A stretch of DNA of 64,000 nucleotides from Podarcis erhardii. Taxonomy: Eukaryota. The notes below the pieces were generated by a model, which saw only the letters and a list, made by a program, of their open reading frames with translations, did not search any database and had not been told where the DNA came from. The stretch lies in the NCBI GenBank assembly GCA_964252035.1, contig OZ176200.1; one strand, written 5' to 3'. A program made the position numbers and the translations under genes. Within the stretch, counting starts at the first letter, position 1. Each line of letters begins with the position of its first letter. Positions 13,204 through 62,600 of the stretch are shown in pieces.

Positions 13204-13301
13204 ACCAAGAAAACAAGTCCTGGAGAAGCTAGAAAACATGGCTTCTGATGCTAGCCATATGCTTGAAGCTGCTCTAGAGCAAATGGATGATATCATTGCA
13301 G
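13204..13301 (+). CDS. PPFIBP2: PPFIBP2 start-codon exon (5' UTR 13204-13237; ATG 13238; MASDASHMLEAALEQMDDIIA + G, phase 1 end)
   Basis: Pyrimidine tract + TAG acceptor at 13201-13203, strong Kozak aacATGG, donor G|GTATTG at 13302. Confidence 0.95.
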
Positions 13302-19300: not shown

Positions 19301-22300
19301 CCTACCTTTTAAGGGAGGGCTTGGCACTTCATAGAGTGGTTTCCAACAGACCACGCTATGAAGTGCCTCTCCCCTCATTCACCTAGGCTGCCTACCACCT
19401 GCACTGCTCTCCTGCCTGCCAGCATGCTGAAGTTGACCTGGCCATGTGAAGTGCAGCATGATGACAGCATTACATTTTTAATGTATGTAGGAAGAAATAG
19501 GAGCAGGAACCTGCAAGCCACTCCAGTATCCCTGCCAAGAAAACTCCATGGACAAAGACAACAGGCATATAAAAGTTATGATGCTGGAAGATGAGGCCCT
19601 CAGGTCGGAAGGCATAAACATGCTACTAAGGAAGAGCGGAGGACAAGTACAAGTAGATTCAGAGTGGATGAAGCGGCTGGGCCAAAGCCGAAAGATCGTT
19701 CAGTTGCAGATATGCCTGGAAGTGTAAGGAAAGTCCAATGCTGTAAAGAAAAATATTGCATAGGAACCTGGAATGTAAGAACCATGAACCTTGGTAAACT
19801 GGATGTGGTCAAAAATGAGTTGGCAAGAATAAATATTGACATCCTGGGCATCAGTGAACTAAAATGGATGGGAATGGGTGAATTCAGTTCAGATGACCAT
19901 CATATTTACTACTATGGGCAAGAATTCCGTAAAAGAAATGGAGTGGCCCTCATAGTCAACAAAAGAGTGGCAAAAGCTGTACTGGGATTCAATCTCAAAA
20001 ATGATAGAATGATCTTGATATGAATCCAAGGCAGACCTTTTAACATCACAGTAATCCAAGTTTATGCACCAACTACCGGTGCTGAAGAAACTGAAACTGA
20101 CAAATTCTATGAAGACTTAGAACACCTTCTAGAAATGACACCAAAGGAGGATGTTCTTCTCATTATAGGGGATTGGAATGCTAAAGTAGGGAGTCAAGAG
20201 ATAAAAGGAACAACTGGCAAGTTTGGCCTTGGAGTTCAAAACGAAGCAGGGCAAAGGCTAATAGAGTTCTGTCAAGAGAACAAGCTGGTTATCACAAACA
20301 CGCTTTTCCAACAACACAAAAGACGACTCTACACATGAACCTCACCAGATGGGCAGCATCAAAATCAGATTGATTATATTCTCTGCAGCCAAAGATGGAG
20401 AAGCTCTATACAGTCAGCAAAAACAAGACCTGGAGCTGACTATGGCTCAGATCATCAGCTTATAGCAAAATTCAAGCTTAAACTGAAATTGTAGGAAAAA
20501 CCACTGGGCCAGTAAGATGCAATCTAAATCAAATCCCTTATGAATACACAGTGGAAATGAGGAACAGGTTTAAGGATTTTTGAGTACAAATGGAGGCGAT
20601 GATTAGGAAAGCTGTATGTGTAGAGATCTGGGTTTAAAAGGAGTTGGTCAAATTCTTGGAGGCCAAGGCTTTCAGTGGCTACTAGTCATTATGGCTATAT
20701 GCCACCTTTGGGATCTAAGGCTGCAATGCCTCTGAATGCCGGTTGTTTGGGAGCAACAACAGGAGATGGCCCCTGCTTTGGGGCTTCTAAGGGGCATCTG
20801 ATTTCCCACATTGCATGGAAAGCATTGCTGGACTAGATAGGCCCTTTTGCCTGATCAACGCAGATCTGCTCTTGTGTTCTTAAACAGTGATGCCTTGTTC
20901 CTTAACACAGCTTTTGACCACTTCTGTTTATTTCCAAAGAGCTTTTGTGGAGTGTCTCACAAGCACCATCCAATTGAACGGAAGCTTTAGAGAAGCAGTG
21001 CTTGTTGGAATACAAACACAAAAAAGAGTCTCAATTGGACCTGACAAACTAATTATTCAAATGATTACATGTATGAAAGTGCTGGAGGAATTGCATTGCT
21101 AAAAGTGGGCTAAAGCAAACTTGTGTGACATTTATGATGGCAGTAAAAATTGCATTTCCCTACAAAATCGTAAAACAAATAAGTAAATACTTGTGGGGTT
21201 TTTTAGTAGTGTGTCTTGAAAAGATGGTGACACCTAATGGTTTGTAGGGGCAATTGCAGGTAGCTGGTTTGGATTTTCTATCTTCAGTTTTTTCCAAAAG
21301 ACTGAAATTATCTTTGGCATATCCACCCTGAGATTGCTATAATTATTGAGTGATTATGATAGGTAAACAAAAATAAATTAAAGAGTAATGTTGAATTGCA
21401 GTGGGGTTAGGGGGTCAAGGGGCAGATCTAAAAATGGGGGTGCAGAATTACAGAAGTTAAGTAAAAGGTTCCTTCAGGAAGTTACTTGTGTTTTGAATAA
21501 CATTTCTGGAAAACCTTTTGAAACTTAGTAGCTTTGTTTTGGAGTTTGCCCAGTTTGTTCCATTTTCAGGTCATCATTTGGTTTTGTATGTTTTCAGTGT
21601 GCTGTTTTAACAGGTCATAACTGCACTGGGCAGCATTCAATTATGTCTGTTGGTGAGTGGAATAGATTATAATACTCTAAGGATTGGTCAGATAGGATAA
21701 TTTTGGCCTTACTTCCCATCCCCTGTGAATGTTACCAGTATTGTATCTTGCATGTAAAGAACTTATAAGTAACTGGTTCCTCCTAAATTGCTTTTTCGGG
21801 TTTTTCTTGTTTTCTTTTAGGTACCAAAGCAGCCGCGGAATATACAAATGGTGTCTATGACATGGTGTCACCTGCTCAGTCAGTGTATTTTGGCACACTA
21901 CAGATCCTTCATCTTCTGGAAGACTTGAAGCTGGCATTAGAAATGGTCAAGGACCCACAAGAGAGAGAAGCTTTGCGGAATCAGATACCAGGGACTACAG
22001 CAGCATGCATACACGCCTGGCTGGAAGAAAATCTGGTAAGGAGAAACTCAATGTCTTTCCATATTATATTGAGAGACTAAAGACTCGTGCATTGAAATAA
22101 GCAGCCAGCTAACCAGCAGGTAGGAGTTCCTTTGTACAGGTGCTACTGTCCTTTAGGAGAGATCATAGTGCATTGGTTTTCCTAGGTTCAAACCATGATA
22201 GCTCTAGTTGAAGAATTCCAGTTTGCAGGGCTTATTTATTAAAAAAAGATTATGCCACTTAATATAATAAGGAACTTTTAGGAGTTTACTTAAAAATACA

Positions 22301-32600: not shown

Positions 32601-35600
32601 TGGGGAGATTGTTTTAAGTGACCTACGTAGGTTTTCATTGGGGCATATGTTTGTATATGCTGTCATAGTACGTTACTGCATACCAACATGCCTGAAATAT
32701 ACCCACACTTAAGTTTTTCACCCCCATTTTTGATATATTATATAGATTTAGAAGTAGCTAAGACAGCAGTTCTGTCTTTCTGTGTCGGAGGTTTTAAAAA
32801 TGCCACCAGCCATGATTCTGATTAGGCCCCGCTGTTGCTGCTTCTGTTATGCAAAGTAGAAAAAATGACCCTGCATTAAACTATGTATTGAACATAATAC
32901 TTGGTTTGGCCCATAGTGAGATTTGGATGAGGAAGCTACAGTAGTTGGAAACTGCTTGGGGGAGATAGAATTCCATGCCAGATCAAGTAACCCACGGCTT
33001 GGACAAGCTGGAAGCTGTCTTTCACATCTTGTGCTTCCTGTGGGGGTACTATTTTGGGGTAGCTATTTTTGAGCCATTCTTAATAACTTCAGTAGTACAA
33101 TCCTGATATTGTTGTGAAGATGCTTGACTGTTCCCAGTGCCTAGCATTGCTGTAATTCCAAGAGTACCTTTTTGTCATGGTTAAGTGATCAGATGGAAAA
33201 ACTCGTGCCATTCTGTTGCTATTGCATACCCTCTGGGGTTTGCTTCCTGTTTGGGTACTTCTGTTTCAAGGTGTGCATTTTCCCCATTCATGGATGCTGC
33301 ACAGAGCAAGACACTGAGATGGAGATTGCTGCCAGCTCCCACCCCATTTTGTCAAGTGGCCTTTGGCCATTGTGAAAGATGGTAACACAAACTGGTAACA
33401 GTGGCTCTTGGAAATTCGTTGTTTGCTTAAGAAAAGGCATCTGCGCACAGGTATATAAATAAACTGTGCACGTGCCCAGAACAGACAAATGGGGAGGAGT
33501 GGGGGGTGGGGGAAGATCGACTGAGGATAGAGGCAGAAAATCACCACAGAGATACTTTCTGGTGTGCTCTGAATATCCATGGCTGAAAACAGGAATGTGT
33601 GGGACCTGATCTGCCCCTCCCTCCAAAACCCCAGATCTTTGTGACTTCCTGTCTTGAAGAAGCACCCCTAGACATCTCCCTAAGAAAAAGGGGGCCTAGC
33701 AGCTGGCACTTTTTGCTGTGGCAGATGGGAGTTTCTTTCCATGATCAACAAGTTACCCATAGGAAGCATGTCTAGTCTAGGTGGCTTACTTCATGTAGAC
33801 GTTTCTTTGGGGGATTCTGTTAAGAAAGGCCGATAGCTCAGTGGGACAGCTCATGCTTTGGGAGTGACAAGTGATAAAATCCCCACCTTCTCCAGGTATG
33901 ACTGGAAAAGATTCCTCTCTGAAGCCGTGGAGAGGTGCTGCCAGTCAGTGTGGGTCAGTACTGAGCTGGATGAAATAGTAGTCTGACATGGCATGATATA
34001 TTTTCCAAAAGAATAGACACAGTCTGCCTGCTTTAAAGATACTTGGCTATGTTCTTGAGCTTTATTGGAAAATAGCACAACGGGCACACATTTTAGGGGT
34101 GGGTGGGGAGGTGCAGCTAAGTGCTTGTTAGGCATGCAATATGTTCACTTGCCATTTCCCCCTCTCAAGTATTACATGGGTCAAGAGCCAAAGCTAATGC
34201 TGTTGCAGAGAAGAAGAAAGGGACACAACCAAAATGACAAACGGAAACCCACCTTGTTATGGGGATTCAATGAGGAGGGCTGAACCATGTGAACTCCTTG
34301 GAGAAAAAGGCGGGATATAAATGCAACAAGCACACCTTAAGCATTGCTTTGATATGTGCCCTCATGTGACTACAACAATTCCTGAATGCTTCCATCTTCA
34401 GCCAGGAAATGTAAACACGTTGAAGGTATTTTTGCAATCTGTTGATGCATTGCCCCCTCTTGGAAATTTGTACAAGGAACACTTGGCTTTGTGCAGAAGG
34501 GGGCTGTCCTAAAATATTTGTGCCTTTGTGAGAATGGAGTAACCAGCAGTTCTCAAACGGCAGGGCTTATTTTTAGCTAAGTCTCAGCCTTAAATAAATT
34601 GGGAAGCTGAGGAGCGTTCTGATAAACACGAGTAAAACAGAGACAGGAAATAGAGGGTCTTTGGGTAATGAGTTCCAGCCACTCTTGAAACAGAAAGCTA
34701 GTGAAGGCATTACTTGAAAATAGTTTCTCTATGACAGCCTAGCAATTTTTAGCTTGTTATTTTACCATTAAAAGGGAACACTCTCACTGCAGTTTTCAAC
34801 TGCACTACAGAAGCTTCCCTTTCCCCCTCCCTCCCTCCCTCTCTCTTTTTTCCCCTCAGACCATCTGGCATTATGCATCTTTTGAAGCCTTTAGAATGAT
34901 ATTACTGCCTGTTGATGACTGATCTCTGCTTAAAAAAACCCAGATGCTCTCTGGGTTGGGGAGGTGGGGAGACGCTGCCTGAAGTTTGTACAGTTGTGTG
35001 TGTACATTCAGCAGAAGAGTTTAGAAGGAGCCCGGGGGACAATTTTAAGTCAAATATGTACAGACATCCAGCTTGCTAGAGGTAGAGAAACTCAGTGTGA
35101 GTTGGGGAGAGCGCTAGATAGAAAGATTGTGGTCTCTCTCCAGAACAAAGCTCTGAACCCAGGGAATATAATTGCTGAGATGGGCCCGAAGCATGGAGAG
35201 TGAGATTGATATTTACAAACACTTCACGTGGCTAAAGAGGGTAAGTGACTCTTCTGCAGTTCTGTTACTTAACAGCTTTGTGGGTAGAGAAAATGGAATA
35301 CATTAACTTTTTCCACCTCTGTGGGAAGTTATGGCTTGTCCCACAGTCTGAAAATGGGACAGGGGTTGAGGAGAGAACCAATATTCCTTTGTCTTTACAA
35401 AGAACAGTGGGAGTGTTCTGAGTACTGTTTTAATGTGGTATTCAATGATAACTGTCCAAAGAGGGTTTCAGATCTGATCCTAGTTCACAGCTAATGGTAA
35501 AAATGCCTGTGTGCATTTCATGTTACCAGCTTTTCAGGTAACCCTTTCTTTCTTTGTCTAATGTTTGCACATATACTATAGTTGCGTGCTTTTAAACATG

Positions 35601-38600
35601 CAAGCTAACCTGTGGATTTTAAATAATTCAATCCCATTGACCACAATAGGTTTGAAATCAGTTTCTCCCAATTCGTTTTGCATTTAGATCACAATGATCA
35701 TATTAATTTTGTAGTGACTAATTTAAATCCAGTATTGAGAAGCACCTTAACTATATTTTATCTATAGGGGATGTGGGGTAGCAAGGGTAGCATAAGGCAG
35801 AATTTCTTTATCTTCTTGAAGAATTTTTGTTTGTCTCTCTACATAAATGTGCTTAAGGTTGCAGTGAAATACACTTCACAAGGAGTATTCATATCACTAC
35901 TCAGTTGGAATAATGCTAAGTAGTACTGCAACATTCCTCTTCCAAGTGCCTTTGTGTACTAAGGAAAATAATAGACAGCCTTGGCAAAGTGCAGTATTTA
36001 TCATTGGCTCTATTAATGACTAAAGTGAAGTTTAAATGAACTGGGATTACATAGTTGAGTTTTTGCACTGAGGAAGTTTGTTTCACTATGCAATATTATG
36101 AATGTCTACTTATAAGCAAAGCTCATTGAGCTTGATGGTCCTTACTCCCAGCTAAGTAGATACAGGATAGCAGCCTCAGGTCTGCCATTCTGGAGACTCA
36201 AAAGGACAAGAAATGGCAGTTAATATTTTAAAGGATATGTATCTGAATGATAAAATAATGCAAATTTTATTATTTATGTAGGAAGTCTGATTTTAGCTCC
36301 AAAAGTAAATGGTCAGATTACGTATTTAGCATCATATATTTTCAAAGCTAAGTGGTGAAGGTTCATAGTAAGTAGGACATACAGCATTTGCACAAAATTG
36401 ATCTTAATATTGGTTCTCTTCAGCTAAACAAATTTTCAGAAAGCCGGACTATGGTTGCAAACTAAGCTCTGGTTTCCTGTGGCAGAAAGGACATTGACAC
36501 TGTTCAACATTCTTGTGGGAGAACTCATTCTCAAGACTGTGGGCGTAATTGGGATTATATCCAAACACAGTTTGCTAAATATGTGCGCGGTACTCTGTTA
36601 AAACAGCCTGTGGAGTCTCTGCTCTTATTCTGAGGAAATGGAAGTGTGATGGAATGTCAGTAGCTTGTGAGTAGCTTCTTTATATGTAGAGGGTTTTAAA
36701 AGTGCAGAACACTGATTGCAACATGCCTGTGAATAGTAATTCTTAAAGAATGGTTGTCGGGACAGCGGAGGGATGCAGTAAAGACAGAACTTATGTTGTG
36801 GTCCCGTGGGGGATAAAATGAGGAAATGCAGTAAAAGGGCTCCAGGCACTTCTGCATTTCTCCCAGGAAAAAACTTGATTCCCATTGTGCTCACACAAGC
36901 TCCTTTGATAAGTACGGTAATTAAAACATTTGCAGAAAGCTGTGCAGTGAATTCATTCTGATGCCACATGATCCCATTGCTGTTGCATGCTTGGGCACCA
37001 ACTGCGGTGGTAACCTGATGCTCTTTTGGCTGGTAATAAAAGCACTGCTTCCTCCAATAGATGCTGGGGGTGGGGGGTGGGGAGCAGCAAGGGTGAGGAA
37101 CTGAACTGGGCTCCCGTCAGTTCTCAGTCGCATGTGCCAAACCTGGCTCTAGTTTCACGGGATGGGGGAATGAAACGGGCATAACATCAGTTTTGTTATT
37201 GCAAGAGTGCAGAGCCAGGTTTGCTGAATGATTTAGTGGTGAGTTGTAAGGCAGGAGGAAAAGTATGAAGTGGCTAAAATATCCAGTTGATCAAATGATT
37301 CTGCTGCCCAAACCTTTGAACCTACTTGCATTTTATAAGCCATAGAATCTAAGGGCTTATGGTTGCTCTACTTGAACTTGCTTGAAAGTGCCATTCATGA
37401 TTTCTGTAGCACTCCTATCAAATGTCCATGACAAAACACCCCTTCCTTGTAAGCAGTTCCAGCCAAGAAGAGGCTTGTTCAAAGTCCAGTGTCAAGAGAT
37501 CTTGGGCACTGGTCATGTGGCAGCATGCGAAAGGGACAAGTAACTGGAGCCAAAACAAACAGCCTCCTCTATTCTTTGATCATAAAGCAAGAAGAGTTGA
37601 TTTTTCTCTCTCTTATCAAAGAGGCTTTGGTGACAAATAGGGGAGGGATTGGTTATATGTGTACTCACATTTAAGGGGGTGATGTAAATTGGCCACAAAA
37701 AGCACTTCATTACTTTGTTTTAAATTATATATGCATTTGTCCATTTCCATGGATCTCCTTTCCATTAAAGAAATTGTGGCTTCTAGTAAGCAGGATAAGA
37801 CTGCAGATTTGAATAATGGTGATACTTTTATTAATGTAAAGCCATGGTTTGTTCAGCTAAGTTACAGTTTGTTTTAATATCTGAAGCAGAAAAAGAAGGA
37901 AGAATAAACCAGAATCCTTTGAATCAGCAGAGTTTAAAGCTGATTTTCAAACTCTCAGCTTTTCTGTTTTCTCTGAATTGATAGACCATTGGAATGTCAT
38001 GGTTCGGGCTCTGATTCCACTTGAAGAGTGTGTCACACCTTTGGAGACAGAAGTAAACTAATGAAGCTGAGTTCAGAGCAGATGATAGACAAGGGTAGAG
38101 GAGCTCTGAACAATGATTGGCCTGTGATACATCCGGAAACCTGGGCTATGATACGTCAGAGTGCTGCTCCATTCACTTTTTGTAAAGGACTCAGCATAAC
38201 TCCACCACCCACCACCCATCATGGAGCTCTTGCATGTACCAGGACATCTAAAATACTGTAAGCCCATTACTGGAAGCATCAGTATTACAAACAAGTTGAT
38301 GTATACCTAGAAATTTCTTAAAAATCCAGTGCTTGCTGTAATATGAAGAAATTGGTTGTGTAGTAGGCACATTCAAATGAGTGGTCCGCAACAATGGACA
38401 TTAGTTTTTCTCTTCTTGATATTTTTCCAGACATGAGTGCAGATTAACTAAATCCAAAGTCTTCAAAATGGTCTGTAGGGCTGAGCTACTGAACAAATAG
38501 TTGGATGACTACATTTTGTTGGCTCTGCTCTGTTTCCACCTGCCAGTTTGCATTTAAAAGAAAGTCAGAATACATTGAACATGTCTCAACAGCTACACTT

Positions 38601-41600
38601 TTCTGCACAAGCAGTTGCTTTTATCATCACATAGCTATTATTCAGTATTCCAAATGGAATATAATGGCTTCACATAAACAAACAAAGCAACCAGTCCTTG
38701 CGATACAGTTGCAGTGAATAGCCTGGGAGAAAAAGGGAACTAATCTGAGTAAATTCACCAAAGAACTCCTGCATGTGTGCTGTGTGGAAAACCAACCTTG
38801 TTTGTGCTTAGTTGAATTAAGGAAAGAATGTTTTTGAGTTCTTCTTCATGACAGTTGTTCATACAAGGCTATGCAAGGCTACCAGTAGTGTTGTTGAAAC
38901 TTGGCATGTCTCCTTCCTGCTTCCTTCCACATTTAGCCTGTTACCATGTTGTGTTCCCATAAAATGCTGTAAAAATTTGTCCCCGCCTTCATCTGCAAAC
39001 TTGGGGGCACCTTTCTTCTCTCTGGTCTCCTACTTTTTACATTCTTTTTTTACATTCAGACCTTGTAATACTTCCCCCAAAATTAATGCACAGGCTTTGT
39101 ATCTTCTTCCTAATTACCTCACATGGTCATTTGTGAGTATAAAATGGGGATATGTTCCTTTGAGCCCCTTGTTGGAGGAAAGGTGGGTGATAAATGAAGT
39201 AGAAAAATCTATTTTCTTTTTTTTAAAAAAAAAAAAAAGCACTGAACACTGCAGAAACCTTATATACCTTTCTCCCTCAGTCCACCCAACACACAAATTG
39301 CAGTATGCCCCACAAAACTCTACAGTGGCCCTCTTAAGTTATGTTTTCCCTTTGAATTGTTTTAGAGGCTTTTGGAAAGAATTTCTTGCACATTAAGTTA
39401 GAGATGAAAGGGCTTCTACCAGGCACACATAATTTATTGGCTCTTTGTGTTAGGTACCCAGGTCCTACTTTTAGGTGCAGAGTAAGGCAGCCACTTCAGG
39501 TAGCCGATTTTTGGATGTATTGAAAATGCAGCGGATTGTAGGTATTTAATATATTGTTATATTTCCACTCACGCAAGTCACGTTTGTGGTGCCAAAATAA
39601 CTCGGCAAGCATTGGGCACTATGCATCTTGGGTGCTTTGTTCAGCCTTCAGGCAGAAAAATGTCTTGGGCCAGTCCTGCAGATGCCCAGTACTCCTTGTT
39701 CTTAGAGAGCAATGTCTCTCTCACCTGCCTCTGTAAACACATTTCTGAATAACCTTGGAGTTCTCCAGGGCATGTATTTGACTTTAGGCAACCTGTCCCA
39801 CTCCAGATTGTCTCTGGAGCCTCTTGATACCAGCCTCCCCTTGTTCCAGTTCTGAGCTCTAGGTCCTGGGATGATTGCTCCAGTTGTCCACTGCTCCCCT
39901 ACCTCCTCCTACAATCTACGCAATTCCGAAGCCATATGTGAAAGCTTTCATGTTAATTTGGAAAAGTGTGGATAACTGTGTAGCTCATACTGCTCAAGGA
40001 AAATGTCTACACTTCAAATATGACATTCTTTAAACACAGCCAGTGAACGGCTGCCAAAACTTAAAAAAGTTCAAAAACCAAATGTTTCTGGGGTTTGTGA
40101 TCCTTTACCAGGTGAATGACCACAGGAGGTTCTTCTTGGGGAGCCATGACAGCACTTGCTTCCATCATAATCTACAAGCCTGTACCCTTGGGCCATATTG
40201 CTATGTTTTTTATCTTCTCATTATGTTTGCCATAAAGAGAGCCAGTATCTTAAGAGATGCCGTCTGAGACAGAGCAGCTGTTTGCTTAGTAGGTGAGCCT
40301 GTCTGGACTACATTTGTCTGTTCTTATTAAACCTCGAAGCAGCTGATGTTTTGGCAGAGCTGATATTTTCTCCTTGGATTACTCTGTCTGATGTGGATGT
40401 TGGCTGATGTAGTTCGATCCCAAGATATTTTGGAAGCGTTAATCAGAGCAGGAAGCATTGTAATACATTATCTATTTATGGCTTAATGCAGGATGAATCT
40501 TTATCCAGAATTTAATGAATTGTCCTGAGAGAGGCAAAACCTATTTCAACGTACAAATTACACCCGCTCTTCTAGTTGCTTAAGCTACCTTTCTGTTGCA
40601 CCAAGGGGCTTTTATCCTATAGATTCATCCTATTATGAACTTTCTGGGTCAAATGTGTCAGCCCAATATTAGGTCTGACTACCTAATGAACGGAGGTCAG
40701 GAATATGCTGAGCAAAGTTATATCCCGATCATAAAGAACGTTGTGAAAGGAAATAAGACACTCTAATTCCAGGTAAGTATGTAGATACTGCCCTCTTGGC
40801 ACTGCCTGTTGCTGCCTTTTGATCCTGCACAAAACTGTCTTGAGGACAGGCTCAACTGAGTAGCCATGAAACTTGCTGGGTGGCCTGTGTCTCAGCTTAA
40901 CGTCCTCTGCAGGGTGGCTGTGAGGATAAAATGGAGCAGGGAGGAGAACCATGTGTGGCAACTTGAGTTCCTTGGAGGAAAGGTGGCCTCTACATTGACA
41001 TACTCAATAAGTATCTGAATAGAGGTGGTTAACTCATTTTACCTTTCAAATCTTGGCTGTGGCATCTTCAGCTGTGCTGGGAGTTTGTATGTGTTTTGCC
41101 ACATACTGGAATGTAAGGAATGTTCTTTATAAAGAATTCAGCAATTGCATTGAACTGTGTCACTCTTATTGCTCGATTTTCCTTTTGTTGTGATAAGGGT
41201 GAACTGTTGACTTTTCATATAGTGTACAATACTTTTTCCAGTGCATGGGAAGAAGTAATGGGTGTATTAATTGTTCGTCAACAGTGAATCTGAAGAACAC
41301 GGTAGGATTGCCACCTTGCAGGCCTGGATGCGTACCTTAAAAAAAATAATTAAAAATCCCCAGTACAATGAGAGAACGTAGCTGTGTCTTCTCTCTTCTG
41401 TTCTCTTCCCTGGTTCTGATGTCTCTGCCTGTTTTGCCCTGGTATCTCACCCATCACAGCAGCCGATGGCAGGACCAGGATAAGAATAGGTGGGATATGC
41501 AGAGGTTTAAAGGCAACTGAACTAGAAAATATGTCTGTTTTACATATTTAAAAAATGTGCATTTCCTGTTTTGAAGGCAGGAGGGTAATAAGTAGCAGAC

Positions 41601-44600
41601 AGCTCACTGAGTTTTGGATCTGATTTGTCTTTTGTGGAATTCCAGAAATATGCTGGAGTTGGATGGGTGGCAGTGGACTGACCTTACAGCTGGGATCAAT
41701 TAATTCCCCCCCCCCTTAACCACCCCCTTCTCTCTCTCTCATATATGGGTGTAGAGAGGGGAAAGGGAAGATGTTTTCACTTTTGCCACGATTATATCCT
41801 AGAAAATTGAAGGGGTTCCAACTCACATTTCATTTTAAAATCCTGCAAAGTGTTTGTGGCTTAGCAGACTTTGTCTGCAGTCCTAACCCCATTTACCTGG
41901 GAGTAGACATGGCTAGGACTGCACTGTCAGCTGAGAAAATTGTAAGCTATGTGATACATTTGTGGCATGTTCTTATAGCTATGATGATTACACAGTGCTT
42001 TGAAGTTCAAGGCAAGATCTAACAATACAATCACATTTCAATTACTTGTAATCTTAACCTGTTGTTCTCTTTAGTCCCAGGTGAATCACCATACTTCTGC
42101 CAGTAATGAAACCTATCAAGAACGCCTGACAAGACTAGAGGGTGACAAAGAGTCTCTCATACTTCAGGTACGCAATTTATAGCATCACCATTTGCATTTG
42201 GAATTTATTGGCGTGTTTGTTGCTCATTGTGAAAAGCAGGAGAATAGAATATCATTATATCATGTATTTAATATTCTGCTTTTCAGGGCAAGGACTATTT
42301 TTTAAAAATCCCTGTACCTACTTCAAATGAAAGAATTTTGGTCTTGGCCTGTGTGGTGTTGAATTCACTTTATTCTTTTAACAGTGTTATTTGAAATATA
42401 ATAAAAGCCTTATGCTATGTTTCTTGGGGGTTAATTGCAGCAACTGTTAGTTATTGTAGTTGTTGGTGTCAACTTTTAAATTCAATTTCCTGTCTGAAAA
42501 TTCTACATATTTTAGATACACATACATATTAAAATATTTAAGTACTGAAAGAGCAGAAAACCTTAGAATCATAGAACTGTAGAGTTGGAAGGGACCCTGA
42601 GGATCATCTAGTCCAACCCCCTGCAATGCAGGAATATGCAGCTGGTCCATACAGGGATCGAGCCTGCAACCTTGGTGTTATCAGCACCATGGTCTAACCA
42701 ACTGAGCTATCCAGGTCTCTATACTCTAAATTTCTGGGTCAAATAGATTGTGGATTCAGCTAGACATCAGCAACAGTAACAAAAAACAACAACAACAAAA
42801 AAGCACATCCCTAATGGGCTATTGACTTTTAAGGGGGACCTGGTGTGACCCCATAGCCTTTAATAGTGTCTTGAAACTGCTTGGCTGCTGCCTCTCTCTT
42901 TATCTGTCTCTGCCAGGAACATGTGTTCAAAGCTGGGACAAAGCTCACTTCAGCGTTTAGCAGTAGGAAAATAGTATCAGTCCATTTTGCATAGCCTAAA
43001 AAAAATTGAAATTTGAGTGAGAAACTCCAGGCTGTAATGTTTGATGGTAGCACCTCTTGTTCCCCTGCTTACTTTTGACTGAAATTAAATGTACAATTGT
43101 TCTCAAACTTGGTTGGTGGTTCTCATTTTATACAAGAAAAAGAGCTTCTCAGTCCAAAGTCTTAAAACAGAGAGGAGAAGGAAAGGAAAGAGGAAAAGGG
43201 GGATGTTCAGCACCTCTTTTTCTAGAAAAATAGAACAGCTTCTTATGCTGGTTACAATGTCCAGTCTACACCCTTACCTTCCAACACAAAAATTACATTA
43301 TGGGAATGTAACTCACAAGCTGTGTACTGTGATGCACTGGTGTTCTACGAGACGGGCTGAAATGTGTGTTGAAATTAAGTCACCATGTTGGGTGTTCTTT
43401 GTATTGTTATGCATAAATTATTTTCTCCCTCCCCAACACCCAAACATAAGCAGTGAAGGAGAGTGAAAGAATTCACCAGGATACTCTCATGCAGTCTGCA
43501 CTGTGACTGAGAAGTATGGGGCAGTCCCAGAAGCATCATCATTGCTCAGAAAGCAATGGCTCATAGCTGAGTTATGAATAAATGGGCAAGGAAAGCAGGA
43601 CATGGCAAAATAATATCACACAGATGCACATAACTTCAGGATCAGGAAGAACACAAAATGTACGTGTGGTGTGCAAGCTTGAAGTGTTCATCTGTTTTAA
43701 TCCAAATAAACCCAGTAAGATAAGGTATCTTATTTTCATGAATATTTTCACCTTCCTATGCACTGGCATTGCATATTCAGGGCAATTAGCTGAAGAGATG
43801 ATCTGATCTGATCATAGTTGTGAGTTCCATGAGTATTATCAGTTCCTGTGCATCTGTTTACCCATTCAAAAGTACAGAAAACAACGTGTGTGTCCTTGAT
43901 GTTCATGTTACGAGCAGTTGGCTTAATTGTGCATTTTGTTCATTAATCAAACATACAGAAATCAGTGGGTAATTGATGTGCATTGCTTGGATAATTTGCT
44001 TAATTGCTGCAAAGCAACTTTCACGGTTAAGCTGATGCATCAGGTTTTCTCAGGAATTTGATTATAATACATACCACCAGTTAGGGCCATTGTCGAAAGC
44101 CGTGAAATGAGGAGTATGGTATTTTATGAGAAGAATATTACAGTGCTTGCAGCATGTCTGTGTGATTCAAGTATCGCAAATGGTTCATTAAGAAACTATT
44201 GCAGTAATGTTTATAGCTTGTTTAATTGTTGTCATTCCTTTAGTATAAGATGTAATGACTACTAGGACACAGACCTTTTGACCAGCTTTTGTCTTAATAG
44301 GTGTTTATACTTACTACTCAAGAGGCATGAAGGGAATAGAAATATTTGAAGTAAGAATACATACATACATCATATAGATTATGCCTTAATTATAACTGTT
44401 AAGCAATAATGAGTTAAGAGATCATTTTTTTTAGGGGGGAAAAACAATATACCAGTAGACCCAGGGAATTCCCAATGTATTAAAATAGTAGACAGACCAT
44501 GCAAGACTGAAATTGGCCCACCAGTAAAGTAGATTGCGAACTCGAATATGATGCCCCTTTTCAGGTTGCACAAGTAGGGCTGTTCAAAATGTTAATATGT

Positions 44601-47600: not shown

Positions 47601-50600
47601 AAGAAAAAGCCTGTGTAGTGTGGTGTATGTTGGACTGAAGCTTGGGAAGGAGTGGGTTCAAATCCCTATTTGGAGATGAACCTTATCAAGATGACCTTGG
47701 TTCAGCTAGTTGCTGCCTTTAAACCAAATCTATTTTATCCGGCTGTTAGAGAACATGAAGAGATTATTCCATGCCACCACCCTATAAGGAAGAGTGGCCA
47801 GCACATGTGGGTGCATATAGCTATGATTCATTACTAACAGTAATGGCTTTTATCCCTGAAAGTATGGAATATTTCCTTTTTATGACTGTTCCCTTTTTGT
47901 CCTCAATTGTAGGTGAGCGTCCTTACAGACCAGGTGGAGGCACAAGGAGAAAAGATCAGAGATCTAGAAGTTTGCCTTGAGGGGCACCAGCTGAAACTTA
48001 ATGCTACCGAAGAGATGCTTCAACAGGTAGGAGGAGTGTGGGATTTATAAAGAAGCTTTTTGTGAATAAGCAGACTCCATGTACACATCTGGCTCTATAG
48101 TCCCTCGAGACAAATAGGCTGGAATTAGATATGTCTCTAGCCTCCTTACAAATCAATTTTTATGAGTTGCTTTTGCTTTCTTGACTGGTGTGTGGTGTCC
48201 TGTATTTCAGGCGTATAATGCTGTGACCAGTAGGCGTGTAAACTGATACCATTGTGTGTATTATTCTTCATTAGTGTGACAAAGAAAAGTCAACAAGAGG
48301 GCTGGATGTGGCTGAAAACCTGTTAAACTGGTTAGATGTACTTTTTTTATATAGCTGTAGAGGTTAACCTAATGAAATGGGTGGCTCAGAAGCTGTTTTC
48401 ACAGAGTTTGGTTTGAGGTTTAAATAATGGGTGATTTTATCAAATTTGGGAAGTTTTAAGTGTTTTAATTGATATTCATTATTTTTAACTGAGCACCTGT
48501 GTCCGAAGGTCTCCTTATATGCAGCCATTTGCTCGCAAAAGCAGTTGGATGGTAGACCTAGCTCATCCCACCTTTAAGCAGCAGACAAAGAGGGGTCAGT
48601 CTTTGCAACTTGAAGTGACTTGCTAAGTAGAACAAAAGCAACAGTAAATACATAAAACAAACTCTGAAGGATTTGTTCCTTGCAGTCTCCAGGCCTGCTT
48701 ATAATCTTGGGATTCTAGAAGTATATCACACTCTGGGATCCTGGCACAAGGAGATCCCAGTTGCTTTTCTCCAACACTGGGAGCTGGCCCCTGTGCTGAA
48801 GCCCCCAAGCATGTGTTTCCTATATGCCTGCATTCACATAAATTAGAGGATAGCTCAGTCAGTAGAGCATGAGACTTTTAATCTCAGGGTCATGGGTTCT
48901 AGCCCCACGTTGGGCAAAAATTCCCTGCATTGCAGGGGGTTGGACTACATGATCCTGGTTGTCCCTTCCAACTCTACAGTTCTATGATTCATATACTGGA
49001 GAAAATATGTGGCAAGCATGCTTCAAAAATACATTTTTCTGGAACATGTGAAGCATCCCATAAAAGCACACTAGTGAAAATGTGTTTGGTAATATCATCA
49101 TTTGCAAGGGAAATTTTATTTAAATTGGTGAGTTGCATTAAAACAAAAACCAGGAATAAGCCCTCCATGACCTTCTCTTATGAAGTATCTAAATTGCATG
49201 TTGCTTTCACTGCCCTGAAGTCGCTTGATAGCCCTAAACAAGCCATGGTCTCTTCAATATGAGGATAGCAATACTGACACACTCAGCATGGTACTTTGCA
49301 TGTAAAACTTACAAGATAAGGTAGGTGGGGCGGCTTGAATATTTGTATAGCACTCTAAAGGTTAGGTGTCGTTATTCCTACACACAATTTGATACATGGT
49401 AGAATTTATCTTCTGTTTCTCTTCCGTACAGCAACAGTAGATCTCCACAGGCATTTTAGTTGGGATATTCTTCAAGCTAGGACTGACTCACATAATCAAA
49501 TACAACTGCCAGCAATATGTTTATAAATATATACTGTGTATATATATAGTCTCCAGGCTTGGCTATATGGATTCAAAGATGCTAGTGGCAAAGTATTTCC
49601 TGGAGTGCAATGTTGCAAGTACAAACTGTGGTTCAGCATGCCAACTCTCATTGCACATCAGGTTGGTTTTGGAGTTTAGTTTCAATTGTGGCATTTGCCA
49701 TGAGCGTTCTTGAATCTGGGCTGTTGTGCTCTAAACAAAAAGGCACAAACTGCACAGTCCTCAAAATATTAGTCGTCTTCTTCTTCTTCTTTGACGATCA
49801 CTCACAGCCGAGTAAAATTGTCTTCCATAAACACGGTTTTAACAATAAGTCTGTAAGTGTCTGTGGAGACCAATTCTGGATCCACACGTCCTTCCACAGT
49901 GGGGACATTGGTTTCTGAGAGGGGGGTTGATTACGTTGTGGATTTGCCAAGCGTGCCTTCCTCTTAGCACGTTTCTCCCTTGCGTCTTGAGTTTGAGTGT
50001 CTTCAAAGCCCATTACAGCTTTGGTAAAGGCTGTTCTCCTATTGGAGCACTCGCAGGCAAGTGTTTCCCAATTGTTGGTGTTTATACTACATTTTCTAAA
50101 ATTTGCCTTGAGACAGTCTTTAAACCTCTTTTGTTGACCACCAGCATTACGCTTTCCATTTTTAACTTCGGAATATAGTCGCTTTGGAAGACGATAATCA
50201 GGTATCCACACAACATGACCAACAAAGTCCAACAAAGTTGATGTCGAAGTGTTAGTATCCAAATGGTGACACTTTCATGACATCTATGTCACAGACAACA
50301 TACATGCATTCATCAGCATAAACAACTGGTTATCTGTAAAGGTTGGGGCTCTGACTTCTTTCCCAGCCATGTGGCAGGAGCAGTGGAGGAGAGTGAGAGC
50401 TTCTCAGTAGTGTGCACTAACCGTGGTTTCAGTGTGACATGTGGGCCAAGCCTTACCCTATCTTTGATCATCACAACCATTTACTAATTTACTTGATATC
50501 CAGCTCTGTTTCCATTTGGTCTCACTCATGATCCAAAAGCACGTGAGGCAGCTGCATCAGCTAACTAAGCAGGTCTGGGTCAATTCAGTGTCTAGATGGA

Positions 50601-53600: not shown

Positions 53601-56600
53601 CCCCACCCTGCTCCAAAAAACAAAACAAAAAAAGGTTTTAAAAGTCTGGACCAAACACTACTCTGTATATGCCTGCAAACTACTTTCCTGTGTCTGGGAA
53701 ATAAACTCTTCTGGAACACACATTTAGCACAAGCCCAATGCACATTCCAATGCAAGCCTGACTTGGTTGTGCCAGATGACTTTCCGTCCAGTAGAGGTGG
53801 CCCAGAAACGAGCAAATTTACCAAAATACATAGGAGCACAGCAGACAAATTAGTCTTAAGAGTTATATTGGGCAGCACTGAACTGGAAAACTGCATGAGC
53901 AGAACAACTTGAGCAAGGGGACTTCCTGCCTGCCTCCTTTATGCATGCCCTGCATCACTCCAAAATCTGCTCTGGAGTATTGGGGAAAACCCCAGAACAG
54001 ATTTAGGGGGTGTGCTGGGGGAGAAGTAATTCTGCTCACACAAAGCGCTACAGCCTATTATCTGTAGCAATCATGTTGTGATATGTCATTTGAAACCATC
54101 CCACAGCACGTTGTTTCAAAAACAAAATGAAAAGATCGGTCTGATATGTAGGATCCCATACATATCCTGCCTCTGAAATTTGTCGGATATGACCATAAGC
54201 AGATCTGCAGGAACGTGAGACTGCTTAACCTTATCCATTTTGCCACTTAAAAATCTTCCCTCCAAAATCTCTTTTCACAACCACAAGTAGGAAACAATAT
54301 GAATACAAGTAGGTCTTCTCCTGTGCATGGAAAAGCGGGGACAGGGGGTGAGGCTTAAGCAGAGGGAAAGGGTTAAGCACCTCTCCTTCTGCCGCATTCT
54401 CCATATTTCAGCCTCCCATGACAACTTCGGGTTTTAAAAAAGAAAGCAGGGAATACATATACACAATTGTTTAAGAAGCAGAGCAGCAAAATTCATTGCT
54501 AAGCTTTCAAATCACACTCAGTACTAACAATTGCTGTGTAATGAATTTGTTCCACTGCCTCAGCAAAAGACCCCTGTTCTGTATTCTCAAGTAAACTCGA
54601 AAATCCCTTGCCTTGTGGTGTCTTTATTTTGTCCCAGGTCTAAAATCAATTATGAAGGGTTGCTTTACTTAATGGTAGTGAACACTTGGGTAAAATGTTT
54701 CCATAAACAAAAACATTTTTAAAATGCCTGTGTGGCTCTTAATGTAATATTTATATTCAGTTAAGTGTTGCCTGTAAATTGTTAAATTTGGAGAAGGAAG
54801 TACTTTTTCTGTCAGCCATGGAATTGAGTGAATAAAAAATATCACAGGCATACACTCCTATTTTTGCAGGAGCTGCTAAGTCGAACATTGCTGGAAACTC
54901 AGAAATTGGACCTAATGGCAGAAGTTTCGGATCTGAAGATTAAGCTGGTTGGGATGGAGAAGGAACAAAGCGAATATGAAGAGAAGCAGAACAAAGCTGA
55001 GGTGAGCCTTGCTTGGTTGCCATTTGAATTCATGACACTGAGAACAGACCTACATGCTCCATCTCCTAAGTAGATGTTTAAAATCTGGCCACGAGGGTCT
55101 AGTTTCCAGCCATGACATGGTGCATGGGAGGGTAATGCTGTGCTCTTCCTTCACCCTTTGCTAGTCTCTACCAACTATTTCCAAGTTGCTTTTCGCGCAG
55201 CACAGATCCCAAGCTCGTTTCTGCAAGCTTTACTATTCTGGTAATTTTGCTTTCTGGTCAGTCTTTGCCAAGGCTGGCGTGGTGAACTGCCATCTCTCTT
55301 TGTTAAACAATCCAGTTATTCCTGATGCAGAAAATTACCCACCCTCCACGGAGGCTGTTGTCTCTGCATGAGTCACTGCTCTGGGTAACCTTGTTCCAGT
55401 GAGGAGAAATGCACATAATAGCACCTTACAGATAAACACGAAGTGGTCTCCAGTGAGAAAGTTCATTCCACTCCAGACATCTTTGGATGCAATAGTGGAC
55501 TGGGCTCCCTAATTTTAACTCTGAAAAAAAGTGTGCCACAGGTGCTAGAAGTCTGGTGAATACTCTGGCTAAGCAGTTTTTCCAAATATGACTGGGAGCA
55601 AACAAAGTGTGTGTTCGCGCGCGCGCACACACACACACTTTACCATGTACCTCATCTACCATATTGTTGTGACCACTCAAACTCACTCTTCTTATCGCAT
55701 ATGTGCTCAGTCATTTGTTTGTTTGTTTGTTTCGACTTCATTCCATGTTTCCTTCGGTCTTAATTTTCTCTCTTCCTCTTGTGTAGTCAGTAGTGAACCT
55801 GATCAGTGAACTACAAGAACAAATGTGTAGACTGCAGCTGGACATTAATAGTAAAATCCAGGAAAGAAAATCCCACAGTAGGAAGCCAAATATGGCAGCA
55901 GTCGGTCCTCAAGATAGCATTGACTCGGTGACAGAGGTCCCTGTTTGGAAGAATTGCACTCAGTGTGATGTATGAGAAGTAAATTTTGGCCTGAGTTTGT
56001 GCATTGCCCCCTTTCAGAGACCAAACTAAACTACTAACTGGAGCTTGCTGTGATCAACTGGCATTAATTTGCATAGTTTTCACTAGACAGAGTGCTGTGT
56101 TTAAGAAACCAACAGGAAAGTTTTGCTTGTCTTGGCCCAGCATGCGTTCATCCAGACTAAGTAAACATGTGCTTTATCTCCCAGTTGTAAATCAGTTTTG
56201 TCTCCTGTTTGGAATGATTTTCTCAGGAGTTGCTCCATGTAAAATTAGGAGGGCTGCTTAAATTGTGCTGCAGCTAGGTTGGCCTAACATACAAGATACT
56301 GGTACTTATCATGGTGTTCAACAGTCTTTTGTATCTATTGTGGGATGCTTTGGTGATGGTCTGGTTGGATAAATGCAGGTAGGCACCTTGATTGTGGGTT
56401 ACATGGTTATTCTTCGTTGTTCTTTGTCTGTCACATATGACATACGTGGAAGGTTTGCTAATGCCCAGAAAAAAGGATACACTTTCAGTATAGGAGGGAG
56501 GGAGTCAAACTGAGTATGTACAGATTTATATGTGAAAAGACATATAAGGATAGACCCAGGGACCTCTCAAGGAGAGAGGGGTAGTCTAGGTCTCTTCATT

Positions 56601-59600: not shown

Positions 59601-62600
59601 ATCTTATTATCTTATTATTATCTGTTATATAGTACATTTAAGCATACAGTGCTGTTTACAATAAGTACTTTAATCCATGTAACCCATTTTACTGGAGGAG
59701 CGACAAGCTTTTAGCCTAGGTCACCCAGGTAGAAGTCCAAGAGTGGCTTTAATGTCAAACATATGGAGTCTGGTTGGTTTTTTTAATAATAAAAAACAGA
59801 GAATAAATCTTGCCTTTCTCTCTATCTTTTTACTGTTCCTCTTTCCCTTGCTATTCTATCAATGTCAGGACTTCATAGGGCAATTCTATGCAGTGCTATG
59901 AATTTCAGCTCTGCAGCAGATTGCTTTCAATAAATGGTTAATATGAGTAGCAGGGTATAATGGTCAAATATGAACAGGTATTTGCAATGTGCAGCATTTA
60001 TTAAGGCGATCTCTTAGCAAAGTGATGACTGAGCTTTGACAATCCAGTATGATAATCCTTCAGCCTACCATTTCATGTATGAATGGCTGGCTCTCTCTAG
60101 TAGAAATCAATCCATTTGTTCCTTTGAGAAAGATAAATAACTCTTTTTAGGTGAGATCCATTCACAGATGTATTGACACACATTAGATATTATGTTGTTT
60201 GTTTATATAGCCTTGAGCTTTGGTATTGGTTTCCATTGTTTGTAGTGTCTATGCATGTTTGGTATAATAGGGTTTGCATGTGTTACTATTTCTCTAACAG
60301 TAACTGGGGAATGTCAGCAAGCTTGTTTCCTGCTGAAGTCCATTGATTCCAAAAGGAGGAAGGTTCAAATATTTGAAATGCCTTGGGTTGCCATTCTAAA
60401 TACTCAGTAGTGTTTATAAGCCCCATTAAACCTGATAGTGTTGAGTGATCATACATTCAAAGATGTTTACTCTTAATGAGCCAAAAATGGAGTTTGTTGC
60501 ATTTCTTAACAAGAAAGCGTTTTCAACGTTTGAACACTGATAGAGATCAGCGGTCATCTCAAATTGTATCTTTTATTTCTTAATGCCTGTTCTGATGAAA
60601 TTGCATACAGTCTCTAATCTGTGTTCTTTCTGCATACCTTATTTGACTCTCTTCATTTCCCACCGTAGAGGAAGTGTATAGGCGAAGGCTAAAAGAAAAA
60701 CGTAAGCCCTAAGATTTCGCTTTATTACTTTTCACACACAAATTATACCTAAAGTGCACTTCTGCAGCAATAATCATTCAATGTTGGCTCTGTAGTTGAC
60801 TGCTGAATCGTAACATGCGGGATGAATATATCATTGCTTACCGCAGACAGAATGGCTTTAATACAGTCAGATTTATTATCTCACACAAAATCTCCAATGT
60901 TGCGTAAGTGAACAGAAAATGGGCATTAAAGAGGCTCTGTCAAAGTTGGTGGACTCCAGAATAGACATTTGTATATTTAAAACCAAAAAGTATACAAAAG
61001 ATGCATTGCTTGTGCAGAGCTTTTACCCTCACCCTTTTTGAAAAGGGGGATTTTCTTCCAAACCTTCAAGACCTAGCATTTTAAATATTTCCATCTTAAT
61101 TGTGGATATACCTTCTTTTTGAAGAAGTCTTCATGAAAGTGAGAAAACCTTGACATAGCTCTTTTAAAAGTCTTTTTTCCTCCTTTAAATCTGACTGGGT
61201 GCTTGTGTCTTGCTTGTTGTTAAGTGTGGCTTTAAGAAAAGCAAAAACTGTGTCTGTCCAAGCTACATCTATGTGGAAATGCCACTGCCTGCTAAAATAT
61301 CATTAAAACACATAACCCACTAATTGGATCGCTCCCATCACTAGATTTGCAGTACAGCTGTGATAATCTAAACTTTATTTTTTAAAAAAACAACTACTGA
61401 ATACTAATTCTCCCCCTCCCTGTACTAATATTTTTGCAACACTATTCTTCTTTTCCTTGTGTGTCACATTGTCATCTTTGCAAAGTATTGTTTTGAAATG
61501 TTACTATTTTAAAAATGCCTAAGATTTGGGATAGTTTTGTTTAGAACACCTAGGAATGTGTGTTGCTAGGACAACTGCTGTAGTCAAATCAGTCCCTGCA
61601 TTCTCAGTCAGCTGTATCTTCATCCCAAACCAAAGACTGTTAGCTCTAAAGTTACTTCCGTGTCTGCAGCAAACAAAAAACGATCTAATGAATGCGTACA
61701 AAACTTCAACTTCTTCCCACTTCCCTTTGAAGGGTACAACCTATTCACAAGGTATATATTCTTAATGGGGAAATGCAGACAGTGACTCCCACATGAAGAC
61801 TTGAGAGCTAATAACCAAAACTTAAATTTTGCCTGTTGATGATAGTAGGGTATAAGGCAGTTAGAAAGTGAGCCCCTAATTAAAAAGCATCTGCTACTGT
61901 TTGGTAAATGACTTTAGCACGGACTAGGATTTCTTTTGCACTACTTGGTACAGGGGTGTGGAGCCTGAGGCCCAGGGGCCAGTTGTGGTCTTCCAGGTTC
62001 CTGTAACTGGCCCTGGAGACTCTCACTAATCCTGCCCTCCAGTGCTTTTGTGTGGCTGGAATGTGATGATGCCTCCCGCTTGCCTAATTGGAGAAGTGTG
62101 TGAATGAGTGTGTGTGTAAGCCCCTGGCTTTTGAGTGACTGGAACGCAGCCTGTTGTACAAAGGTGAGAGTCTCTTTTGCTGCCTTTTGCCCTTTGCACA
62201 TTTTTGGTCCAAAAATGTTCCCCCACCGCTGGTTTCCTTCGCCATACAATGGAGATAGATGAATGCAAGTAGCAACAAAATCTGTATTCTAGCAATCAAT
62301 AGTTTCCAAGCCTCTGCATCCAATCCCTTATGCAATTTACTATTTTTGAAAGGTCCATGGTTTTATTTTAATAAATAAAATAATAAATAAAATTTATTAT
62401 TATTATTACTCCCTCCTCTGGCAATCTTTACAAAACTTTAGTTTATGGTTGCCATCAATTTTGATTTTAATTCATTTTAATCCATTTTTATACTGTTTTA
62501 TAATGCTGTACTGTTTTAGTGTTGTTAGCCGCCCTGAGCCCGGCTTCGGCTGGGGAGGGCGGGATATAAATAAAATTTATCATTATTATTATTTATTATT

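Follow-up and report, generated by a model that had tools for sequence, protein, structure and literature searches.

A conserved alternative first exon in a 20-kb intron of PPFIBP2 predicts a short liprin-beta-2 isoform in Podarcis erhardii

The stretch of DNA analyzed here (hereafter, the window) comprises 64,000 nucleotides (nt) of contig OZ176200.1 from Podarcis erhardii (NCBI GenBank assembly GCA_964252035.1) and contains the 5' part of PPFIBP2, the gene encoding liprin-beta-2, on the + strand. Within the 20-kb intron that separates the second and third canonical coding exons of this gene, the interval from approximately 35011 to 35240 very probably constitutes the lacertid orthologue of a conserved PPFIBP2 alternative first exon, yielding a short liprin-beta-2. 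An initial annotation, made from the sequence of the window alone, had proposed at this location an internal start exon whose 16-residue peptide replaces the first 93 residues of the protein, and public Podarcis gene models, the annotation of other amniotes and mammalian mRNA contigs all agree with that proposal. The exon is not new, since the short isoform is already present in public annotation, with RefSeq and Ensembl models for Podarcis and many amniotes. The case indicates that a reading of raw sequence alone could correctly call a coding first exon of 48 nt, and two features of the locus appear worth the attention of specialists: a promoter-proximal block that outscores every coding exon when lizard is compared with bird, and an out-of-frame ATG located 13 nt before the start codon (hereafter, the -13 ATG) that all the species compared have in common.

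The coding part of the alternative first exon spans positions 35193 to 35240 on the + strand and consists of 16 codons encoding MESEIDIYKHFTWLKR. Read base by base, the start codon at 35193 lies in the context gaAGCATGG, with A at -3 and G at +4, and the splice donor GTAAGT (35241-35246, + strand) is in phase 0, coming after a whole codon. These coordinates all agree with the 16-codon ATG exon and phase-0 donor, 6.8 kb before the next exon, that had been described at the outset. The donor had also been called a perfect AGG/GTAAGT; its site and phase stand, but it is better termed strong, as its exon side reads AGG and the consensus is (A/C)AG. The exon lies, on the strand of the gene, inside the 20-kb intron delimited by the exon ending in EENL and the exon beginning with SQVNHH, the latter 6.8 kb downstream. 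Two canonical coding exons do not belong to the short isoform: the first, part of which encodes MASDASHMLEAALEQMDDIIA-G (13238-13301, + strand), and the second, with 71 codons and ending ...AWLEENL in phase 0 (21821-22035, + strand). Together they amount to 279 nt and therefore to 93 codons, in accordance with the extent of the replacement as first proposed. In-frame stops are found immediately 5' of 35193, and the start exon can therefore neither prolong the canonical frame nor serve the long transcript as a coding cassette.

Downstream of the junction, the long and short isoforms share the acceptor exon SQVNHH...SLILQ (42075-42168, + strand), which reads SQ VNHHTSASNETYQERLTRLEGDKESLILQ and, at greater length, SQ-VNHHTSASNETYQERL..., followed by a shared coding exon at 47913-48026 (+ strand; short-isoform residues ~48-85) and another at 54867-55001 (+ strand; residues ~85-129). 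Two acceptors lie in tandem at the start of this shared acceptor exon, at 42075 and 42081, six bases apart within 42069-42081 (ttag/TCCCAG/GTG). Public long-isoform proteins use both of them, with NL-SQ-VNHH in 72 proteins and EENL-VNHH, which corresponds to the second acceptor, in 10. The short start exon was observed only with the first acceptor, at 42075, the public short proteins reading KR/SQ (n = 155) or KR/TQ (n = 6).

The 20-kb intron contains 7 GTAAGT and 13 GTRAGT sites, and an in-frame open ATG at least 5 codons long accompanies 1 of the former and 2 of the latter; among these sites, 35193 alone presents a good start context. With about one ATG-plus-donor site expected by chance in an intron of this size, the configuration is therefore mildly unusual on sequence alone, and not significant. 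A chance open reading frame (ORF) beside a chance donor, without biological use, would be compatible with this expectation (approximately one phase-0 ATG-plus-GTRAGT site per such intron) and with the absence of a CpG island, but it is refuted, and left with hardly any probability, by the conservation of the peptide, the donor, the leader and an upstream block across amniotes and by the existence of spliced mRNAs in mammals. The reality of the start exon was accepted because cross-species comparison settles what the sequence of the window by itself cannot. Within the window, self-BLAST identified no repeat of the exon region, and no meaningful Rfam match was obtained for 34300-35500.

Three public Podarcis entries start with exactly MESEIDIYKHFTWLKR, namely XP_053246678.1 (P. 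raffonei, isoform X8), XP_028586527.1 (P. muralis, isoform X11) and A0A670HQA3 (Ensembl, P. muralis), their beginning being MESEIDIYKHFTWLKRSQVNHH. Public proteins were mapped exon by exon onto the DNA of the window via local tblastn. The Podarcis models map at 100% identity throughout, with residues 1-16 falling on 35193-35240, residues 17-48 on 42075-42170, residues 48-85 on 47913-48026 and residues 85-129 on 54867-55001. The splice junction anticipated for the short transcript, joining 35240 to 42075, is hence the same junction used in the public Podarcis models, an agreement of models by homology.

More distant relatives were reached by using the second canonical exon as query, which led to a parrot PPFIBP2 protein (P0008), and by using in turn the shared coiled-coil part of that protein; residues 1-40 of the swan and of the Pogona short isoforms served as further queries. 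The coiled-coil search listed 120 bird liprin-beta-2 proteins, 31 of which open with MDGEIDIYKHFTWLKR followed directly by SQVNHH. The short N-terminus is annotated in lizards (Pogona X9/X12/X13, Podarcis, Phrynosoma), snakes (Candoia, Liasis, Vipera), turtles (sea turtles, Gopherus), alligator, ratite, galliform, anseriform and neoavian birds (including chicken X27-X29) and mammals (cattle X13, deer, bats, rodents such as rat, cats, lemurs, monkeys, apes). The matches also include entries named as curated human RefSeq isoforms 8, 9, 10 and 12 and the human cDNA FLJ57653, which were taken into account by name only. A variant of the 16-residue peptide followed directly by SQVN was found in 153 fetched proteins from squamates, turtles, alligator, birds and mammals. 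The window peptide conforms to the consensus N-terminus M-[DE]-x-[ED]-I-D-[IV]-Y-K-H-F-x-W-L-K-R and is identical to the common sauropsid form at 14 of 16 residues. Variation within the peptide, across the 153 proteins, is confined to positions 2, 3, 4, 5 (in one protein), 6, 7 and 12, and the replacements are conservative: the window and Podarcis present E2 and S3 whereas most sauropsids present D2 and G3, and mammalian short isoforms are distinguished by D4, V7 and S/A/T12. Two sea-turtle models (P0225, P0227; MLLEVE...) differ in that their frame stays open for 42 codons further upstream of the conserved ATG. The homologous stretch is recognizable in the window but broken by stops, so that a turtle-type extension is impossible there, and on this comparison the extension is not conserved coding sequence.

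At the DNA level, the genomic loci of the window, Phrynosoma (L001) and sage-grouse (L002) were compared, with a bovine mRNA added for the coding comparison. The Phrynosoma locus presents the same order of EENL exon, start exon and SQVNHH exon, bearing out for this lizard the expectation that the peptide would be kept at the orthologous intron position, and in grouse the exon and its donor are conserved. The peptide, the donor, the leader and approximately 650 nt of upstream DNA are conserved across amniotes, the genomic DNA upstream of the exon having been compared between two lizards and a bird. The strongest block of the intron in the comparison with Phrynosoma is 34512-35339, at 80% identity over 855 nt. 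The comparison with grouse is topped, over the whole 42 kb, by 34553-35270 at 276 bits, with no coding exon scoring above 175 bits. In the three-way alignment the conserved sequence is distributed over a core at 34580-34780, a second block at 34980-35060 and a third block containing the exon and the donor at 35140-35250.

The core block (34580-34780) is a conserved non-coding element located 400-600 nt 5' of the start codon, with 72-93% identity to grouse in 40-nt windows and with runs of 24 and 21 bases that are invariant across the two lizards and the bird. The mammalian mRNA contigs stop downstream of this element, and it is probably a promoter or enhancer of the short isoform. Inspected by eye, it displays an ETS-like motif (CAGGAAAT), a forkhead-like motif (ATAAACA) and TGACAG. 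At the other end of the conserved region, the sequence GGGTAAGTGA at the donor is identical in the window, Phrynosoma and grouse. Within the 48-base coding part, 45 bases are invariant between the lizards and the bird. When the window, Phrynosoma, grouse and the bovine mRNA are compared, the differences fall on codon positions 1 and 3 and never on position 2, and the counts of synonymous versus non-synonymous codons are 4:4, 4:3 and 3:2 in the main frame, as opposed to 0-1:4-8 in the other two frames.

Mammals make mRNA with this start exon. Five Logan contigs, of 2.8-3.1 kb, each contain an uninterrupted frame of 796-799 codons that opens with the peptide, and they therefore represent spliced mRNA. 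The product of L003 and L004 is identical to Bos taurus X13 at 795 of 797 residues, that of L005 is 98.7% identical to a Phyllostomus protein, and L006 and L007 derive from another mammal. In the window, in Phrynosoma and in grouse alike, the genomic DNA that precedes the ATG is colinear with the contig leaders, which range from 68 to 158 nt. The 5' ends of the two longest leaders (L004, 158 nt; L006, 147 nt) are separated by approximately 4 alignment columns and correspond to ~35011-35016 in the window. By homology with these leaders, the 5' untranslated region of the alternative first exon would extend from 35011 to 35192 on the + strand, its 5' end being approximate. The mammalian leaders fit a first exon of ~230 nt with its own promoter and are no proof of the cap site.

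A different architecture would result if the exon were, or were also, internal, spliced through the AG at 34859, instead of being a first exon with a promoter of its own. Placed behind the canonical exons, it would introduce in-frame stops and function as a poison exon or as a 5' exon without coding content. The initial annotation had regarded the CT-rich tract ending in CAG at 34857-34859 (about 34814-34859, + strand) as a possible promoter element or acceptor. That suggestion did not survive the comparison, in which the tract is missing from Phrynosoma and grouse, aligning there mostly to a gap: the three-way identity drops to 5% over 34820-34859, between flanks that are conserved on either side, and the tract is therefore a lineage-specific expansion and no conserved promoter element or polypyrimidine tract. 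The AG itself and the ACC that comes next (34858-34862) are conserved in both relatives, the identity between the two lizards is 82-97% from 34860 to 34939, and one ab initio Phrynosoma model (P0309) does make the exon internal. However, no pyrimidine tract precedes that AG in Phrynosoma or grouse, the frame starting at 34860 contains seven stops before the ATG at 35193 is reached, and, except for the ab initio P0309, no fetched protein combines the canonical N-terminus with the peptide. Moreover, the 5' ends of the two longest mammalian leaders nearly coincide, a few bases apart, and neither leader shows an upstream exon. Taken together, these observations make an internal exon very unlikely, and a first exon remains the preferred interpretation.

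The -13 ATG, at position 35180, lies in the context gagATGg, with G at both -3 and +4, and opens a short upstream reading frame of 7 codons, MGPKHGE followed by a stop (35180-35203, + strand), which is out of frame with the start codon and overlaps it. This ATG is kept in 9 of the 9 sequences examined, including Phrynosoma, grouse and the five mammalian mRNA contigs, in whose leaders it is the sole upstream ATG, and the frame that it opens varies from 6 to 9 codons across species, overlapping the start codon each time. Sauropsids (MGPKHG...) and mammals (MGAQHGWGH) encode different peptides in this upstream frame, and hence it is the position of the upstream frame, rather than its peptide, that appears to be conserved. 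The -13 ATG probably limits or regulates the translation of the short isoform via leaky scanning.

Pressed further, the same features would turn the exon into a mainly regulatory, poorly translated leader, spliced as described here, in which the -13 ATG takes most of the ribosomes and the protein product starts at a later methionine. The favorable context of the -13 ATG, the extension of its frame past the main ATG and its invariable presence all lend themselves to this explanation, and so does the conservation of the exon DNA, which at 45 of 48 bases between lizards and bird exceeds what coding would need. The protein comparison speaks against it, since more than 150 proteins vary at few positions of the peptide and do so conservatively. 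In addition, no nucleotide difference touches codon position 2, the main frame alone is enriched in synonymous changes, and the context of the main ATG, with A at -3 and G at +4, is kept in every sequence. We therefore regard a leader-only role as improbable, and favor an exon that is translated from 35193.

Several observations nonetheless weigh against interpreting 35011-35240 as a first exon that yields a short protein in this lizard. The three Podarcis entries are predicted models, and the location of the start site derives solely from where the mammalian contigs end. The exon region presents no CpG island, and a TATA-like motif that can be seen in Phrynosoma and grouse is degenerate in the window. 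Furthermore, a -13 ATG in such a strong context should catch many scanning ribosomes, and the protein output may therefore be low. From the sequence comparisons we infer where the promoter lies, that the exon is used in this animal, and what its functional effect would be. In the literature on PPFIBP2 isoforms and alternative promoter use, no functional study of the short isoform, its promoter or its upstream ATG was found, the sole item on isoforms being a table that lists a tumor-specific human cDNA.

The 93 residues that are replaced in the short isoform hold two segments conserved between liprin-beta-1 and liprin-beta-2, ASxMLEAALEQMDGIIAG and LHLLEDL...QIP..TA...EWL, both of which are predicted to be helical in a model of middling quality (predicted local distance difference test score, pLDDT, of 63). 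The second segment, equivalent to canonical residues 45-90, matches the 51-residue liprin-beta-1 chain of PDB 8iw5, a structure that we take to be a complex of liprin-beta with KANK1; a fold search with the mediocre model (pLDDT 63) did not return 8iw5. If this assumption is right, the site for KANK binding would be missing from the short form. The fragment of the liprin-beta-2 coiled-coil dimer in PDB 3qh9 corresponds to canonical residues 184-264; this stretch is retained in the short isoform, and a loss of dimerization is therefore not expected. Of the altered dimerization or partner binding that had been foreseen for the short protein, the part concerning dimerization is thus in need of correction, whereas the loss of conserved N-terminal helices is upheld. 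The likely effect is that whatever binds these helices is no longer bound, and self-association and liprin-alpha binding should be retained. Apart from the coiled coil and the SAM domains, the region dropped by the short isoform is the only conserved portion of liprin-beta, which makes this isoform a natural tool to probe the function of the N-terminus.

In the mechanism that these elements suggest, a promoter within the 20-kb intron would drive a separate transcript with a leader of ~150-180 nt, translation would begin at 35193, and a phase-0 splice would join 35240 to 42075. The product would be a liprin-beta-2 with MESEIDIYKHFTWLKR in place of the 93 N-terminal residues, probably deprived of the partner of the N-terminal helices and still equipped with the central coiled coil and the three SAM domains, and its translation would be restrained or tuned by leaky scanning past the -13 ATG. 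A more far-reaching proposal, which we advance tentatively and hold to be possible rather than probable, is that a distinct liprin-beta-2 has been kept for more than 300 million years that leaves the helix partner (possibly KANK) unbound, dimerizes and binds liprin-alpha, and may thereby act at cortical adhesion complexes by uncoupling the long form or by competing with it, with its output set by the ~200-nt upstream element and the overlapping upstream ORF.

Other features of the locus were recorded along the way. Two further stretches, 55722-56068 and 60582-60851, align with grouse at 175 and 132 bits, respectively, as strongly as constitutive exons. Approximately 1.2 kb 5' of the start exon, 33820-33990 opens in the manner of a tRNA gene (ggccgatagctcagtggg...) and has the appearance of a tRNA-derived short interspersed nuclear element. 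The intronic ORFs at 19664-20023 (+ strand) and 49798-50262 (- strand) are presumably fragments of retrotransposon-like proteins, which we take to be an endonuclease-like region and a C-terminal tail of the kind that reptile long interspersed nuclear elements often carry. A transcript-like lizard fragment (P0001) is 97% identical to the second coding exon of the window and continues after ...EENL with 17 residues (EHWLSYQL...) that are encoded nowhere in the window; this tail may come from an alternative exon further downstream or be peculiar to another species.

Compared with systems already described, the exon of the window presents no detectable difference from the three Podarcis models over the part that the window covers, and it shares with the short isoforms of other amniotes its position in the gene, the 16-residue start peptide and the phase-0 junction to the SQVNHH exon. 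With canonical liprin-beta-2 and with liprin-beta-1 (PPFIBP1), the short isoform has in common the coiled coil and the three SAM domains, and it differs from canonical liprin-beta-2 in being devoid of both conserved N-terminal segments. The arrangement around the start codon, finally, resembles the general mechanism of leaky scanning past an overlapping upstream ORF, in which, as here, a conserved short frame in good context starts just upstream of the main ATG and runs past it.

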